Under the pieces are notes generated by a model. That model saw only the letters and a list, made by a program, of their open reading frames with translations, had not been told where the DNA came from and did no database searches. This document shows positions 8,874 through 60,789 of a stretch of DNA of 64,000 nucleotides, one piece after another. The stretch covers positions 64,657-128,656 of the forward strand of contig MU619309.1 of the NCBI GenBank assembly GCA_025201805.1, written 5' to 3'. The stretch comes from Parasitella parasitica NRRL 2501 (taxonomy: Eukaryota > Fungi > Mucoromycota). Position numbers and translations under genes: made by a program. The number at the start of each line of letters is the position of its first letter. Position 1 is the first letter of the stretch.

Positions 8874-11800
8874 ATGGATAACGCTGTATTTGAGGCCCTT
8901 TTAGGTGTCGCAGATAGCGATGGTACTATTCGTGTAGCTGCCGAGAACAAACTCAAAGAGCTGGCAGTTCAACCTGGTAAGATGTCTTTGTCTGTTAATG
9001 CATATCATTCAACTGACACCCCTTAAACAAACACATTACGGTTCAGAATTCCCCATCAGTCTTGCAAAGCTTACTGTCTCTCAACAACATATGATTTCTC
9101 AACGTCAAATATCCTTTTTTTTTTTTTTTTTTTAATACTTGAAATGCGACTAACTGCTATACTGATCTGTATTTCCTTAACCGATACTTGTTTACTTGGC
9201 AGCAGTTACTCTCAAATCATTTGTCACAACCCATTGGTCCAGCAAAAACGACGATAAATTTATCGGCCCTGAAGCTTCTCCAGAGGTAAATCAAGCAAAA
9301 AGCAGGGAATGATTGTCAGGGTTTATGAAACTTACCGCTCAGCGCAGAGCAAATCTGCAGTCCGTGAAATCATCATTACAGGTCTCACAGATCCAGAATC
9401 CAAAATCAGAATTGTAAGTGCGTATGTTGTCTCCAAGATTGCTCATGATGATTTCCCTGAAGATTGGCCCAATTTGTTTGACATTTTGCTGAGCTATCTT
9501 ATGGCTGATAACAGCGACAGTGTTCACGGAGCCATGCATGTATTGTTAGAGATGGTCAAGAACGACATCAGCATCCAGCAACTCCCCCAAATCGGTCCTG
9601 TATTGATCCCCGAAATGTATCGCATCCTGACATCTGACAACGTCTATTCTTTCAGCACTCGTGGAAGAGCTGTCAACATTTTCACCAGCTGCGTAAAGAT
9701 GATATCCACGCTGCGCGAAGAGAATCCTAATTTGGCCGATAAATTCATCGCTCCCATCATTCCTCAATGGATTGAGGCTTTTATACACGTCTTGAAGCAC
9801 CATGTGGAAGGCGACGCTGAAAAGGCTACTGAAGAGTACGGGCTCAAGATGAAGGTTGTGAAATGCATCTGCACTATCTCGGTGGAATTCCCCAAGTACG
9901 TTTCAGCTAATTTACCTCAAATTTTTGAACCTATTTGGATGGATCTGTACAACTTGCGCGAGCGGTACGCTCAGGAGTTTGTCAGTGAGGATGGAGATAT
10001 TGGAGAAACATATCAAGATTCTGACGGAAATGAGGTTGGCTTCCAAAACCTGTTGTATGTGCTTTTTGAATTTGTTGGTACTGCATGCACCAAGAAGACC
10101 GTGAGGGACTTGTTCGTCAATGCTGAGCACGCTGCCACTGGTTTCTTTGAACAGCTCTTGTACGTCCTGATCATTTATATGCAGATCACGCATGAGCAGA
10201 TTGAGGCATGGTCCTCAGACGCCAATCAGTTTGTTGCTGACGAGGAAGATGGCACATTTACGTTCAATTCCCGTGTGGCTTCCATCGACGTGCTCATAAA
10301 CTTGCAAGATGCTTTTCCTGCTCCTTTCTTCAACGCTCTATCTGCTGCCACTCAGCGTCATATCACTGAATCAAAGCAGGCCCACCAAGCTGGCAGCAAT
10401 GATTGGTGGAAGATCCAGGAAGCCTGTTTGCTGTCCATAGGTCGTCTCTCTGTAGAGTTGACGGAAGCACTGAGCGACGAATCCAAAAGTGTCCAGTTTG
10501 ACCTCAAGAGTCTGTTTGACCATGTTGTCTTGGAGGATATGCAGGCGGCTGATTTACCTTTCTTGCAGGGCCGCGCCTTTGTATTTGCATCAGAATTTGC
10601 CAAAATCCTACCCAGCGACATGGCCAGCCAGTACGTATCTGTTGCAGTTCAGGCACTTCAGTCACCTGTGAGTGGCATTCCTGTCAAGATATCTGCTCTA
10701 AGAGCTTTGGACAACTACTGTAAATACTTGAATGCCGAGTTTGTGACACCCTATCAGGTCAATATCATGGTGGGCACCTGTCAACTCATGTCTTCTGCGA
10801 CAGAAGAATCATTGATGCTGTTGTTGGATACTTTGGCTTCCGCAATCAAGATCAATCAAGAAGTAACTGCCAAATACGAACACATCCTCACACCGGCCAT
10901 CCTGCAAATCTGGCAAAATTATGCGGACGACTCGATTATAACTAGCTATATCCTCGATTTGTTTGAAGAGTTTGCAAAGAATGAATTCTACTACAGTTCT
11001 CTTTGCACTAAGGCGCTTCCTTTTATTAGTCAAGTATTGTCTACCCCTGATACTGATCCTGTCGTGTTGGCGGTAAGTTTGAATTGTCTTTCCCCCCCCC
11101 CCTTCTCCACCCTCCCCCCTCCCCACCCCATACCAGTTCAACCAGTTACTCATTCTCTCTGCGTAGTCTGCCATTGATTTGTTAACTGCTATGATCTCTT
11201 TCAGCCCTTCTCCTCTTCCTGATGAATTTACCGAGCAAATGTTCCCCAGTTTAATGCAACTTGCTTGGAATGTGCCGGTCATTGATTTGCTCCAGAGCGC
11301 TCAAGAATGCTTGAAACAGTTTATCAGCAAAGACGTGGACCATATTATGAGATGGCATGACCAGCAGGGCAAGACTGGTTTAGATTATGTTATCCACTTT
11401 ATTGCAAAGTTGCTGGAGCCCACTGGCACTGATTCTGACGCTCTCTTTGTTGGTGATCTGATCATTACTCTTATCCAAAAAGCCGGCAGCGGGATTGCAC
11501 CCGTCCTGCCCAACTTGTTAACTGCAGTGCTCAGCCGCTTGCTAAATACTAGCCACCAGCCTTTCATCCAATCTCTTGTCATGGTTTTTGCTCATTTGGT
11601 CATTTCTCAGCAAGATACCGTTTTCCAGTTCCTCTGCGACACTAACATCAATGGCAAGAGTGGTTTGGAAATCCTTATGACTACATGGTGCGAGAATTAT
11701 GACAGTTTCTCGGGCTATTACACTATCAAAGTCAGGTAAGTTGCTGTTGAATGATTCTTTGCGTGCAACACCAACACGCTCTCCAATCTAGCACGATTGC

Positions 11801-12475
11801 GCTGTCAAAGATCTTCCTCCTCTCCAGTGATCCACGACTCCAGACCATTACAGTCAATGGCGAGATTGTTGTTAACCCTAATGCTGGCATTGTGACACGT
11901 TCGAGATCAAAGAGAAGTCAGTTTCCAGTGATTTGTTTTGTTGGTTCTATCAGTCAACTAATATGCTCAATTAGATCCTGATCAGTACACCACCATCTCT
12001 TTGCCAGCCAAAATAATCAAGCTTTTGGTTTCTGATGCTACTAATGCTTACATCAGCGAGCAAGCTCCTGCAGAAGACGCCGAATCTGTTGAAGATGAAG
12101 TGAGTTGTGCTGGCAAGGACGCAAAACCAGCAACTAACAGTATACTAGGGAGGTGATTGGGAAGATGTGGATGATGGGCCGTTTGCTTCTCACAATGACA
12201 TAAACCTTTTATCTGGTAAATATAAGTCCCTTGATCCTCAAGCAAGCCGCTAACAGTATTCTGCGATAGAAATGTTGGGCAACATTGAAGACAATGACGA
12301 CGAAGAAAACAGCCCAGACCTGAAGAATGACCCCATTTACCAGACTGACATCAAGGCTTATTTATCAGACTTTTTCCGTAACTGTCAAGCACACAATGTC
12401 AACAACTTCCACGAGATATGCCAAACACAACTAAACCAAGAAGAAAAGTTGACATTAGATTATGTGCTTCGCTAA
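8874..12475 (+). CDS. IPO9: Importin-9 / Kap114-like karyopherin-beta, about 9 exons
   Basis: IBN_N motif RVAAENKL...RQ|LAAVTLKSFVTTHW, IAHDDFPEDWPNL, WWKIQEACLL, PFLQGRAFVFAS, and a C-terminal DLKNDPIYQTDIKAYL. Confidence 0.9.
9109..9195 (+). other. U12-type (minor spliceosome) AT-AC intron
   Basis: 5' splice site ATATCCTTT, branch site TTCCTTAAC at 9173-9181, 3' splice site TAC at 9193-9195. Removal joins ...SQRQ to LAAVTLK in frame. Confidence 0.93.
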
Positions 12476-12946
12476 CAACCACAATAAACAAGGCATTATC
12501 CCGCGCGGATCTCGAGCGTGGAACATTTTAATACATTCTTTTTCTTTCCTTCTTTACTGCACTTTACAGCCATGTTTTCTTATGATGATATGTATGTCAA
12601 AATCATCAGCAGATGTTTGTCTTTGCTATTATCATTTGCATCATTTGTGCCTGACTATAAGAATTTTGTTGAAAGGCTAATTCAGGGATTGATGGTTGTC
12701 ATGGCAGCGTGTTTTATTTTGATATTTATAGTCACTTTTTTTTTTTTTTTTNNNNNNNNNNNNNNNNNNNNNNNNNNNNNNNNNNNNNNNNNNNNNNNNN
12801 NNNNNNNNNNNNNNNNNNNNNATTAACTCTTGTAGCCTTTGTTCCAAAGCGATCTCCTTCCTCTCATTCTAGTGTATTTATCTAATCATAATATATATCC
12901 ACAAGGAAGGATCGATATTCAATGAGGTATTAAAGAGAATGATGAC

Positions 12947-15900
12947 ATGAATACAGAGAGGAATAAACGCGTTAATAATGTAAAAAAAAATAGCAACCCA
13001 CATCCTGATCGCCCAATTGCTCAACCTAGACGTCGTTTAAACAGAACAACTTCAACCAATTCAGTTGGGAGCGCTGGCAGTGCTACTGGCAGCACGAGCC
13101 CAATGACTCATTTTGGACTGGGAAGCCCTTCGTCCACAGGAACAGCAGCCAAACCTCCGGTGCAGCCAGCATTTGGAGGTTTTGGTACTGCCGCTACTTC
13201 GACCGTGGGGTTCAATACTCAACCTAGCCATGGCACAGGATTTCAATCAGGCTTTGGCAGCCCCATGACAAATCCCCCTGCAACTTCAGCGACCACCTCT
13301 TCTATAGGATTCGGTGGATTTGGTGGATTTGGAAGCCCATCGGCACCTACACCAGCAGGCAATCAGCCATTTGGGGGATTTGCGACTCAAAGCAATATGA
13401 GTGCATTTGGAAGTGCAGATAAACCACCTACTTCTAGCAGCACTGCTGGAGGATTCCAGTCAGGATTTGGAAACACTTCTGGAAACTTGTTTGGTGGTTT
13501 TGGTTAGTATATTTTCACAGGAACGTCAGAATGCAGTCCATTCAACCGCCACATGTGTAGGAAAACCATCGCAAGCACCCAAGAACGATGATGACAATAT
13601 GGATGCGGATGAACAGCCCTCTGCAGCGCCTATCTTTGGCGGCTTTGGAGCTAGCAAACCTCAGACCTCAACGCCTGTGTCTGCTCCTACCTTTTCCTTT
13701 GCCTCTACCGAGCAAAAGCAATCACCATCCCCATTTGCAGGATTCTCGTTTGGTAAACCAGCAACGACTAGTGCCTCTACAACCAATCCTCCAGCGTCAA
13801 CAGCAACAACAGCAACAACAGCAACAACAGCAACAACAGCAACAACAGCAATAACAGCAGCAACAACAACAACAACATCATCATCACCTTTTGGTGGATT
13901 CAATCAAACCGGTTCCAGCGACACCAAAGATACGCAGAAATCTGCAGAAGCAAATAAGCCATTCAGTGGATTTAGTTTTGGGACACCCAATACCAGCACA
14001 TCGACCATCTCATTTGGCACTACGAAAGCAACCGAAGACAAGCCTAGTATTGCCCCGTCACCGTTTGCATCATTTGGAATGCCACCCAAAACCACATCTC
14101 TGACTGCTGCCTCTACCGCTGCGAGCACATCTACCATTTCGTTTGGCACCACCAAAGCCATCAATGACAAACCATCACCATTTGCTTCATTCGGTGCTCC
14201 GTCCAAAACCACCCCATCACCATTCACTTCATTCGGTGCCCCATCACAAGTCGCAGCTTTGCCATTTACCGGCTTTGGCCAATCTGCTCCCTCTGCCAAG
14301 ATTACCGAGATTCACTCCCCTGAAAGTAACAAAGGAGAGGACAAAGAAGAGCAAACTGGCATTAATGAACCGTCTGCATCTGAAAGCCTCAAGTCAGCCA
14401 GTGAAAGTGCCGCCCCACCACCAGCATTTTCGCTGAATACTCCCTCTGTCAAGCCTGCTGAGGAAGCATCTGCGAAAGATGATAAAAAAGTAACAGCAAC
14501 TTCCGCCGCAAACGATACCTCAGACAATGAAACTGCCTCTTCTTTGTCTGACCAACAGCGCAAAATCAGCTCAACATCTACAGCCTCTGACACCAGCACT
14601 CAGGTAGTAGCAGTAGCATCTCCTGCCCCTTTTGCCTCTCTCGCTGCAAAAAAATCCGACGAGCCTTCAGAGCCAAACAAACCCGCATTTACTTTTGGTT
14701 CGTCTAGTAAAAATGCAACAGACGGATTTTCTATCGCAAAGCCATCAGACCCTCCTGCAGCTGCATCTTTATTCTCTGATAAATCTGACAAGAAATCTGA
14801 AGGCACAGTATCAGACAGCGCAAGCACCAAAAGTGATAAAACGCCCGTGTTTTCATTTGGAAACCTCCCAGCAGCAACGTCTTTAGCTGATAAGCCTACT
14901 TCCTCTCCCTTCTCGTTCTCATTCAACAAACCATCCAGCAGTGATACAGCTGCTGCAACCCCCAAGCCTTTTGCGTTTGGAATGAATACAGCCACAACAG
15001 CAACCGACAAGCCCGAAGCGTCGCAACCTTTCACGTTTAATGCGCCTGCATCTACAACTGTTGACAAGCCCTCTCCATTCAAATTCTCTGGGTCCACTAG
15101 CAGCTCTGGGGACAAGCCTGCAAGCTTCTCATTCAATGCCCCTGCCGTCGCCACTGCCAGCAGTAGTACTGGTTTTGGCAAAAAGAGAGATAGAGACGTA
15201 GATACAGACGATAGCAGCAACGAGCAACAATTGCACAAAAAGAGCAACACATCAAGCTTTGGTGCGCCCAAATCAACTTCTACACCTCCATTCTCATTCA
15301 ATACTCCAGCCAAGGACTCTAGTTCTTCTTCCGTTACATTTGGCGCGACACCTAGCAAATCAGACAATAGCACCAAGGAATCCACCGCTGCTCCCACTTT
15401 TACATTTGGCAAATCGCCTGAAAAGGGAGACTTTCAAACGTTTACATTTGGCTCGCCTGCAAATGCTGGTGGCGCTGAAAAGAAAGACTCCTCTGCAGCG
15501 GCATCTACCACACCAAAGAAAACCTTTACTTTTGGTGCGCCTCCATTGACAACAGATTCAGCAACCACTGAAGACAAAGGAAAGGCTAAGGCTACCGCTG
15601 TTGACAGTAATAAGCCTGCTCTCTCATCTGGTCCTGCTACCACCGCCCCATCTTTGACACCTTCTTTCGGTGACAAGTCAGGTGCTGGCAAAGGCGACAG
15701 TGCCGCTGCTATTTCCAAGGCAGACAGCAGCACGCTGATCCACGGCAAATCTCCTTTATCCAAATCAATCTCACCAAAGACAGGCGAAGCTTCTTCAAAT
15801 GAGGAAGCGAGCGACGAGAGCAAAGCATCCGCAAATGCTACCAAGAAAGTCAGCTTTAATCTCCCAGAAACCTCTTCTTCCTTTAGTTTGCAATCTGCGG

Positions 15901-56479: not shown

Positions 56480-57298
56480 TGTGTTTGTGGTGGAAGGGGA
56501 GAAGAAATAAGAAAGAGGGGGAGAAATGACCAAAAGCCAGACCTCACCATGCCTATTATATAGGTAGCGCCCCCCAATTTCCATGTGAAAATTGCACTGC
56601 ATGTGAACATGAGCGATCGTATTTCTTTATAAATGATGCAACATGGCCAAACTGTGGTACACCCAAGCGGCATGTGGGATATATTCATGATTTGTGTGTT
56701 TCAGCGCATTTTTACCCAAGCCAAGGCATCTCTACACATTGTACGGTATATGGCTTGAATGAAATGAATGTGCAAACACCGTAATGCGCCATTTTCAATT
56801 CGTCCAACAGACAAGACTTACACTGAGTTGCACTGCTTAAATTGATAGGCAAACGTTATTCATGCCTTGTGAAATAATCTCGAATCTATAAAGCAGCAAC
56901 TACGGCGATTACGGCGGCAAATTGAACCTTCAAATGTTGGCCTATTTCATCAATATTAAATAGACAGAATACAAAAGCAACATACATATATATTATATGG
57001 GGTGTAAATACAAATGTCCTTGGATGCGTCTACTATCCTCAGCAGCTATTTGGCACTGCTCGATAGACATTGCAACACACATTAGTAGTTTTGCCCTGTA
57101 CGCCAAGTGCTAAACTAGGACGTAATGAGAGCTACCGAGAGCCATTATGAAAACAGACTGAACCAAGCACAACAACCTTGCTTCATGCTGTAAACAGTGG
57201 TGTTGTTAATACGGTGACTGTTTTGAAATGCATATATCGGCTGCTTCCACTTTTGCGATTCAACCATGAAAATTTTTCCCCATACAAACATAACCGAT

Positions 57299-60293
57299 AT
57301 GAGCTCTGTCAACGAAAATACGCCCTCCACAAGCTCATCCAACACCAATAGCGAAAGACCTGATAATACGAACGAGACATCAACGCCTTCCCCATCCTCA
57401 TCGGCACCAAATAATGCAGCATTGGATGTCCATGCACTGAAAGAAAGAATTATAGCAACCAACAAGCTTTTCAAATACCTGCAGGATGCAAAGAAAGGCA
57501 AGTCTTTGGCCAAGTTCTTTCTAGATGCGTACTAACCGCACCTTCAACCATAGAACTGTCTACGCGCGAAGCCCAAATTAGCACATTAAAAGCAAACTTG
57601 GGCCTATCAGTCAAGAATTCCCAAGAATCAGATGAGAAATACAACAAAGTAGCAGACCAAGTCAAAGTATTAGAGGATCAACTAAAGGCAAAGTCGTTTC
57701 AAATAGATTCTTTAAAAAACGACCTGAGAAAGCAAGCTGACCTGGCAAAGCGGATGGGGTCCAATGCTGCAGAATTCAGAACCGCAAAGGATCAAGTAGC
57801 AAAGTTAAAGGAAGAGAACCAAAAGTTGACAGAAACCATATCAAAGTTGCAGGCTGAGAAAGACCAGATGGACGAGGAGGCCATGGAAACTAGCATCAAC
57901 CATAATTTGACGATCGAATCACTTCGCGAGGAAATCACAGATCTGCAATCGTCCTTAACGACCGACGATTCAGAATTAGTCTCTTTGCGGCTCCAATTGT
58001 CGGCTGAAAAGAGCAAGGCATCTAAAGCCGCTTTACATATCAAATCACTCGAGCAGAGCTTACAACAGTCTAATGAACAAATCAAAGAGTTGAATGTCCA
58101 GCTACTTGAGAAAGAGCCCCAGCAAGCACCAACATCTGCCACCAATGACAACATGGATAATATAAAACGAATGCATGCGGAGCAAGTGAATAGTCTGAAG
58201 CAACAGATTTCACAATTGGATTCAAAGCTGGAAAGAAAGGCAGCATTACCACCAACAACACAATCAGCAGCAAATCCAACTCTGCTCAAGAAATACCACC
58301 AACTTAAAGGAAAATACCAATTGATGAAAAAGACAAATGTATTTTTGAATCAAGAGCTGCAATCTGCACTATCCAATGCCTCAGAAGACCGAGGGCTTAC
58401 ATCCGACAGTGATCCTGATAGCGCGAGCCATGAGTCTAGCGACGATGCGAATATACCAACACTTGTTGATTTGGAAACCTCACTTCCAGAATCAGCCAAA
58501 ATTCCAACCGCAAATCAGCACAGCTCTACTCTTCCCCGCCCAAAATCTGCTAATGCCAGCAAAGCGCCTCCTGTTTCCCTTGTTCAACACAGAAATCCGT
58601 CCAGAGATCCCCGCCTTGCTCATCAGCCAAATCAACATCAAGAAACAGAGGAACTCGGTCTCCAACAAAAGTCAGGTCTCATTGCTCCACCGCCACAAGG
58701 AACTGCCACAAAGTTACCCAAAAAGCGAAAGAGCTTGCTACTCAAGTTTGTGAATGCCAAAAATCCTTCCAAAGTGCTCGAGAGAGCCAAAGCCCCCACC
58801 GCCTCCAATACAACCGCACTTGCTCTTTCAAAAAAACGCTCGCATAGCTCAATACAAAACGACGATCAGGCCACAGAAAGCGCTTCTAATCAAGTCGACA
58901 GTGCCCCTGCCAATGCTGCTGCTGCTACCACCAGTACCACCGCTAGTACTGCTAGTAGTAGTGCCACTGACGTTCCATCGAAAAGGATTAGAGCAGACTA
59001 CCATTGGAATCATGTTATTGAAGGCATATTCAACAAGAGTCACGGGAAAGTGTTGCCCACAAGGGTAGAGTGCAAAGAAATCACTCTTCATTTGCTGGAT
59101 GAAATCCAAGATTGCTACTCTAGAATCAAGTCTGCTGCTGTGCTTACCGATTCCAGCCTCGTTCCGTTTGGTGCTTCTGACTTGGAACTGCCTAAATCGA
59201 TGGATCATCGTGAAAAAGTGTATGCTTGGTTCCTGGTGTCGTTGTTGAAAGTCGATGTAAGTTGACCAGAATGTGGGAAACAGGGTCGGTTTTTTTGCTC
59301 AGTAGCATTCATAATAGCGACAAGAGTTCAATTCAGTCATGTTCAAGTTGGCGGAAAGTACCAAGAATTGCCCAGTGTCCAAGGCTCCAATAAATAACAA
59401 ACTTGTGTAAGTGTTTTGGTAGTTTTCAAACATCTATCAATCTAACCGTTTTTCTCGATTCCAGCCGTCTGATCAGGTTATTCGCTATAGTTTGTAAGGC
59501 TGAAGACTCGCTTGGCCGGCTTTGTACCCTGGTTTATACATTGCTCAGGATTCCAGCCTTCCAATCAAGTCTCATTCCATCTCTGCTGAACGTAGGCTTT
59601 GTCTGGAAAGAAAGCTTTGCTTTTGTGAGCGCTGATCCTCATTTCGACTCCTTGCACAATACTTTTGTCTCTTGTATCCACCTTGTAAGTTGCCGATCAA
59701 GCTCTACAAAGAATGTAAGTAATCTAGCTTGTGTTTTTTTTTTTTTTTTTGCGATTCCTCGTATTCATGCCCTATTGCCTTAGCTAAAGCAGATGGAAGC
59801 ACAATTGTCAACGCTCTTTAACTGGCCGCCGCCAAAACTCGTTTTAGATTGCATAGAAGACTCGATGAAGATTCTCCAAAGCACCTACTTTAAAGAGCTG
59901 CACGCAAACGACAGGAGCAAATTTGATTTATTGTCGTTCAATTTGATCACGTCCTTTGAATTGGCTCTTGTCGTTTTGGATGACTGGAAACAGACGTATG
60001 ATATATTTATCAGACAAAGGCTGTGGCCATTGTTGAGCATGGAGGTTATTGACGTGGTAGCCATGGAGCTGCTCGGAAAGCTCGCAAGACTAGGCATCTC
60101 TGACGACCCCTTGAAGGCAGACAAGCCTGGAGTTGTAACTCTGCTCGATACTTTTTCGACAATCATTGATTTGGGCAAGGATATCGATCCCAGCGAGAAG
60201 CATTTACAATTTGCCGCTGCAAGGTCCATGGTCGCTGTGGCTGGAAACCATCATCATTACAAAAAGTTTTTGGCTAATGTGCATGGTATTTGA
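57299..60293 (+). CDS. Coiled-coil + low-complexity + helical C-terminal protein, ICE1 (little elongation complex subunit 1)-like; 5 exons, first intron GC-AG
   Basis: Introns 57498-57553, 59257-59317, 59407-59464 and 59714-59783 give one frame. N- and C-terminal motifs resemble metazoan ICE1 (from memory). The gene model is solid; the identity is inferred. Confidence 0.6.
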
Positions 60294-60789
60294 AATAATG
60301 GAATTACATCATCTTGAGATTTTTGGTTTNNNNNNNNNNNNNNNNNNNNNNNNNNNNNNNNNNNAAAAAAAAAGCCTCTGATATCTAATGAAATAAGCAA
60401 CGAAATCTCTTTTATATACCGTACAAATTTTTGCTGGCCATGCCATATCGATGACTCCCGCCTTTATCAATATGTCAAAATGTGGATGGGCCGAGGACAA
60501 TCGAGAATCGTGTAGCTTTCCCCCTATGACAGACTATTCCTATGTATCCCAATGTCTCGGTTGATGATTTATAAATAAATAAAAATAAAAAAGGATTGTA
60601 TCATTGTGGAGCTATAACCAATATTTGTCGGCACTGCTGTATTGACTCTTTGTCATTAAAAGTCTTTGAAAGATTTATTCAAAAAAAAAAAAAGAAAAAA
60701 AAAAATATATAATATATTAGCTGCGAGGTTTTTTTTTTCTTTTTTTTTTGGTTGATTAAACCATTTCTTTTTGTCTTTCAACACTTAAT

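Follow-up and report, generated by a model that had tools for sequence, protein, structure and literature searches.

The little elongation complex (LEC) has been studied in flies and mammals, where it drives RNA polymerase II (Pol II) transcription of snRNA genes, and it comprises ICE1, ICE2, ELL, EAF and ZC3H8, working with SNAPc and Integrator. Its scaffold is ICE1 (KIAA0947; 2266 aa in human; Pfam PF25817, ICE1_C), which is needed for Pol II recruitment and binds ELL through its N-terminus and ICE2 and ZC3H8 through its C-terminus (PMC5493778). Human ICE2 also contacts Integrator directly through INTS13-14 (10.1101/2024.01.24.576984). A second role has been reported for human ICE1, in which a predicted C-terminal MIF4G domain binds eIF4A3/EJC and links splicing to nonsense-mediated decay (NMD) (PMC5896957). 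Integrator is described as metazoan-only (PMC5493778), and ICE1 has been reported absent from Saccharomycotina and Basidiomycota, which led to the suggestion that it was lost early in fungal evolution (PMC6351623). No report of a fungal ICE1 or LEC was found in literature searches that left most subscription journals uncovered, and the fungal proteins described below are unnamed in public databases.

Here we describe an ICE1 homologue in Parasitella parasitica NRRL 2501 (Mucoromycota), located at 57299-60293 on the + strand of a window of 64,000 nucleotides (GCA_025201805.1, contig MU619309.1, positions 64,657 to 128,656). An initial annotation, made from the sequence alone, had proposed a candidate fungal ICE1 with an N-terminal block, a long coiled coil, a disordered middle and a C-terminal helical domain, whose conserved blocks follow the same order as in human ICE1. 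What it described in the sequence is confirmed in every element, and its reading of the protein as an ICE1 homologue is supported; its further inference, that early-diverging fungi may retain an LEC that Dikarya lost, is addressed only in part, by the partner genes found in this genome. The Parasitella protein resembles animal ICE1 in having an N-terminal motif with a coiled coil, a low-complexity middle and a homologous C-terminal helical domain with a MIF4G-like part, but it is 916 aa long rather than about 2200 aa.

Gene structure and transcript support at 57299-60293

The gene has five exons, 57299-57497, 57554-59256, 59318-59406, 59465-59714 and 59784-60293, which together give 2751 nt and 916 aa with no internal stop. 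One assembled transcript contig of 2820 nt (run X1, from a single study, whose RNA status is a software guess) starts at 57295 and skips introns 1-3 as listed joints and intron 4 in its aligned pieces. Intron 1 (57498-57553) is of the GC-AG type with a CTAAC branch point and corresponds to a 56-nt skip in the transcript contig, while the public model of this gene (P0001) misses it, reads into it and is wrong for about ten residues. The region 60294-60526 is a probable 3' UTR, covered by contigs to 60329 and at 60365-60526, but the A-run after 60329 borders an N gap and a genomic A-tract and is therefore not proven to be a poly(A) tail.

Exon 1 begins with the ATG at 57299 and encodes a Ser/Thr-rich leader followed by the conserved N-terminal motif (L/I-K-x-R/K-I-I-x-T-x-x-L), seen as the ALKERIIATN block at 57434-57496, where the coiled coil starts. 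Exon 2 carries the coiled coil (to about 58390), which is supported by weak coiled-coil Pfam hits, then a Pro/Ser/Thr/Ala-rich, low-complexity linker with basic KKRK/KKR patches (about 58390-58990), and then the start of the C-terminal domain. The C-terminal helical domain of about 370 aa (58993-60290) continues through exon 3 and exon 4, the latter encoding the helix pair with the C/R-rich motif that is best conserved with animal ICE1, and ends in exon 5 with the TGA stop. The other conserved blocks of the initial annotation are present in order, RLIRLFAIVC at 59466-59549, VWKESF at 59601, WKQTY at 59985-60035, MELLGK at 60063 and LQFAAA at 60204.

From their translations, the neighbouring genes were identified as a divergent acyl-CoA dehydrogenase-like gene and HBS1, and gene order is not conserved with Mucor circinelloides or Geosiphon. 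A low-depth 315-nt contig of run X1 lies at 56687-57001, in the intergenic region between the dehydrogenase gene and ICE1, and may be DNA.

Relationship to animal ICE1

Our spliced model was searched exon by exon, while whole-domain comparisons used the public entry P0001 and its relatives. Exon 5 alone hits Pfam ICE1_C (about 59829-60047; E 4.8e-4, 20.4 bits), below the gathering cut-off of 27 bits, and the gene is consequently not a cut-off member of this Pfam model, its assignment to ICE1 resting on the direct comparisons given below. Word searches with exon 2 and with the public model found only Mucor and Parasitella, a word search with the alignment gave nothing, and sequence searches of the PDB gave nothing relevant, with no solved relative found by the fungal profile. 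A profile of the Mucor/Parasitella C-terminal domain found 36 proteins at E up to 0.001 among 1.84 billion; this search returned no named animal, and every named protein is from Mucoromycota, spanning Mucorales, Endogonales and Glomeromycotina and including Bifiguratus, Jimgerdemannia, Calcarisporiella, Geosiphon, Ambispora and Acaulospora. Full-length members share the same layout, and the N-terminal motif is recognisable in 19 of the 20 examined. Of 32 aligned members, 17 hit ICE1_C (best E 4.2e-5), 7 hit DUF5087 (PF17006), and none hit INTS2 (PF14750), any other Integrator model or MIF4G; the best relative, from Choanephora, reaches 26.9 bits over ICE1_C model positions 12-175. DUF5087, a microsporidian family, is also hit by the animal ICE1 piece in overlapping model positions, and although all of these hits are weak and below cut-off, it may be a further remnant of ICE1.

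The gene is single-copy in the Parasitella genome, whereas two near-identical ICE1-like models (P0027 and P0054) on different contigs of Mucor mucedo suggest a duplication in that species. The domain tree recovers Mucorales (98/98) and Glomeromycotina (100/100) as groups and broadly follows fungal lineages, which fits vertical inheritance, but it includes only one full animal sequence, whose branch is long and of unsure position.

For a direct comparison with an animal protein, in which no human sequence was used, a degenerate DNA pattern taken from the fungal alignment was scanned over metagenome contigs. Two of the six hits were real, the other four (contigs L009, L011, L012 and L013) being chance matches. 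One vertebrate-like contig (L010) was translated and scored, and is not taken for human, since it has no Alu-like words in 10 kb and its translation differs from the human protein. Contig L014 holds an open frame of 2182 aa with Pfam ICE1_C at 62.3 bits (E 6.7e-17), and it appears to be an invertebrate ICE1. The fungal profile matches it with an hhalign probability of 98.8-99.0 and E 4e-17 to 4e-18 over about 200 columns. In pairwise BLASTP, the Geosiphon member gives 92 bits (33% over 204 aa) and P0001 gives 42.7 bits (24% over 176 aa). Because L014 had been selected by a 25-residue motif, it was also scored without it, and the profile still gave 47.4 bits downstream of the motif only and 41.1 bits with the motif masked, against at most 8.5 bits in 2000 shuffles and 5.1 bits for the reversed sequence. 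The fungal N-terminal motif finds its best site at residues 26-52 of the animal protein, with 7.0 bits, which is weak alone given that at least 5 of 5000 shuffles scored higher (top 9.5), although real coiled-coil decoys reached at most 2.6; both ends therefore match in the same order. The fungal domain shows about 17-24% identity to its animal counterpart, and the fungal protein lacks the roughly 90-aa insertion and the N-terminal CxxC seen in L014.

The AlphaFold model of the 370-aa domain has a mean pLDDT of 92.7 and a pTM of 0.90, and is almost all helical. Foldseek against the PDB gave no hit at E up to 0.001, and an Atlas fold search gave one UPF2/MIF4G cluster at TM 0.50 and no ICE1 cluster. 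Structural alignment with VIA-align ranks MIF4G domains first for the initial 236 residues (to about 59890), which are followed by further helical repeats: UPF2 MIF4G-III leads (Z 10.8, rmsd 3.8, 200 aligned), then eIF4G, CWC22 and DAP5, with PAIP1 and NOT1 also among the best fold matches. At 6-12% identity, with no Pfam MIF4G hit and a different architecture, this is a fold relationship only. A MIF4G domain is also the best compact natural match of the animal domain (Z 12.2, rmsd 3.0), but that model was built with fungal alignment rows and is not independent, and Z-scores of 10.8-12.2 are within the range common for helical proteins, so that they support rather than prove the link, in agreement with the MIF4G domain predicted for human ICE1 (PMC5896957). 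An Atlas feature search with exon 5 alone returned generic ARM/HEAT clusters, while another Atlas feature search ranked INTS2 clusters (0.91) above the ICE1 cluster (0.88), the latter sharing the most features (162 against at most 139).

Candidate partners and snRNA genes in the same genome

An ICE2 homologue is encoded on contig C78 of the assembly (10846-11334; NARG2_C 39.3 bits, cut-off 30.8), within a gene region at about 10700-13800 on the minus strand that has a long acidic N-terminal exon; no LxID Integrator-binding motif was found in that exon. INTS2 is encoded separately on contig C41 (109.6 bits), and SNAPC3 (SNAP50) is found at two loci, C42:43279-43893 and C189:6283-6857. Searches of the genome for ELL, Occludin_ELL and EAF gave no match, but the same kind of search, which had no eukaryotic control, also missed ICE1_C. 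A complete fungal LEC is thus inferred and not shown.

Two U1, two U2, one U4 and one U5 gene were found. All six share an A-tract/TATA/GG element about 45 to 30 nt upstream, and no significant PSE-like word was found among them, whereas human Pol II snRNA genes are PSE-driven and the addition of a TATA box switches them to Pol III (PMC5493778). A GTCAC/GTGAC word upstream of 5 of the 6 genes is not significant (12% of shuffles). The TATA element is not exclusive to snRNA genes, as versions with one mismatch occur about 300 times in the genome, mostly in two dispersed repeat families, one of which has a TCACC word about 20 nt upstream. Exact copies with no Rfam match downstream, at C48:85320, C91:31160, C157:37589 and C358:931, are possibly unannotated RNA genes or ordinary promoters. 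Downstream, AATGAAAA lies 13-40 nt after the 3' end in five of the six genes, with AACGAAAA in the sixth; none of 3000 dinucleotide shuffles reached five, and 3 of 254 A-rich background windows carry it. This candidate 3' signal differs from the human 3' box consensus and could be a 3'-box analogue or a poly(A)-signal variant, the sample being only six genes, two pairs of them paralogues.

Possible roles of the fungal protein

We consider the gene to be, very likely, the Mucoromycota orthologue of animal ICE1, a compact version that keeps both conserved ends and shortens the disordered middle. The analysis itself establishes the gene, its splicing and transcript support, its homology to ICE1, its single copy, a domain tree that broadly follows fungal lineages, and the presence of ICE2, INTS2, SNAPC3 and Pol II snRNA genes in the same genome, whereas its function, its binding to partners and its occupancy of snRNA genes are inferred from human biochemistry alone. 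In this view, it would be a nuclear scaffold whose N-terminal coiled coil binds an ELL-type elongation factor and whose C-terminal MIF4G-like domain binds ICE2, and the complex would bring Pol II to snRNA genes, support their elongation and work with Integrator on 3' end formation. We give this LEC-like role in snRNA transcription a probability of roughly 0.6; the missing ELL and EAF matches, the TATA-type snRNA promoters and the absence of an LxID motif in the long ICE2 exon speak against it.

A less likely alternative is that the protein is an ICE1 orthologue whose main job in fungi is the EJC-linked role in NMD. The conserved part is the MIF4G-like domain, with UPF2, CWC22 and eIF4G among its top fold matches, the human C-terminus binds eIF4A3 (PMC5896957), the gene itself has four introns, and Mucorales genomes are intron-rich. 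On the other hand, ICE2, whose described role is in LEC, is retained in the same genome, Yarrowia keeps an EJC without ICE1 (PMC6351623), and the N-terminal motif, in the region that binds ELL in human, is conserved. Slightly less likely still is an ELL-less ICE1-ICE2 module tied to Integrator or other Pol II attenuation machinery, which would be neither a true elongation complex nor snRNA-specific. The lack of ELL and EAF matches, the TATA-type promoters and the direct binding of human ICE2 to INTS13-14 favour it, but the ELL/EAF blank is uninformative for the reasons given above, ELL and EAF occur in fission yeast, and the shared downstream 8-mer suggests a dedicated snRNA 3' pathway. Convergence of an unrelated coiled-coil plus HEAT/MIF4G protein, for example an INTS2-like or UPF2-like one, could be suggested by the score below the Pfam cut-off, the INTS2 ranking in the Atlas search and the absence of named animals from the profile search, but it is largely refuted by the separate INTS2 gene, the lack of INTS2 or MIF4G Pfam hits in any aligned member, the larger number of features shared with the ICE1 cluster, and the match to an animal ICE1 that survives removal of the selecting motif, with both ends in the same order.

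A broader reading, which we hold only tentatively, is that the whole animal-type snRNA transcription axis (SNAPc, an LEC built on ICE1-ICE2, and Integrator) predates the animal-fungal split and survives in Mucoromycota, where it would work on TATA-type snRNA promoters with its own downstream AATGAAAA-like 3' signal, and that DUF5087 may be a microsporidian remnant of the same ICE1 domain. The finding is a range extension of a known protein, in line with other animal-like genes retained by these fungi, and not a new mechanism. It provides a compact, well-modelled 370-aa domain for structural work and genetically tractable moulds in which ICE1's older role, be it snRNA transcription or EJC-linked decay, can be addressed. 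A fungal ICE1 together with ICE2 dates the pair to at least the animal-fungal ancestor and shows which parts of a 2200-aa, mostly disordered protein are the conserved core.
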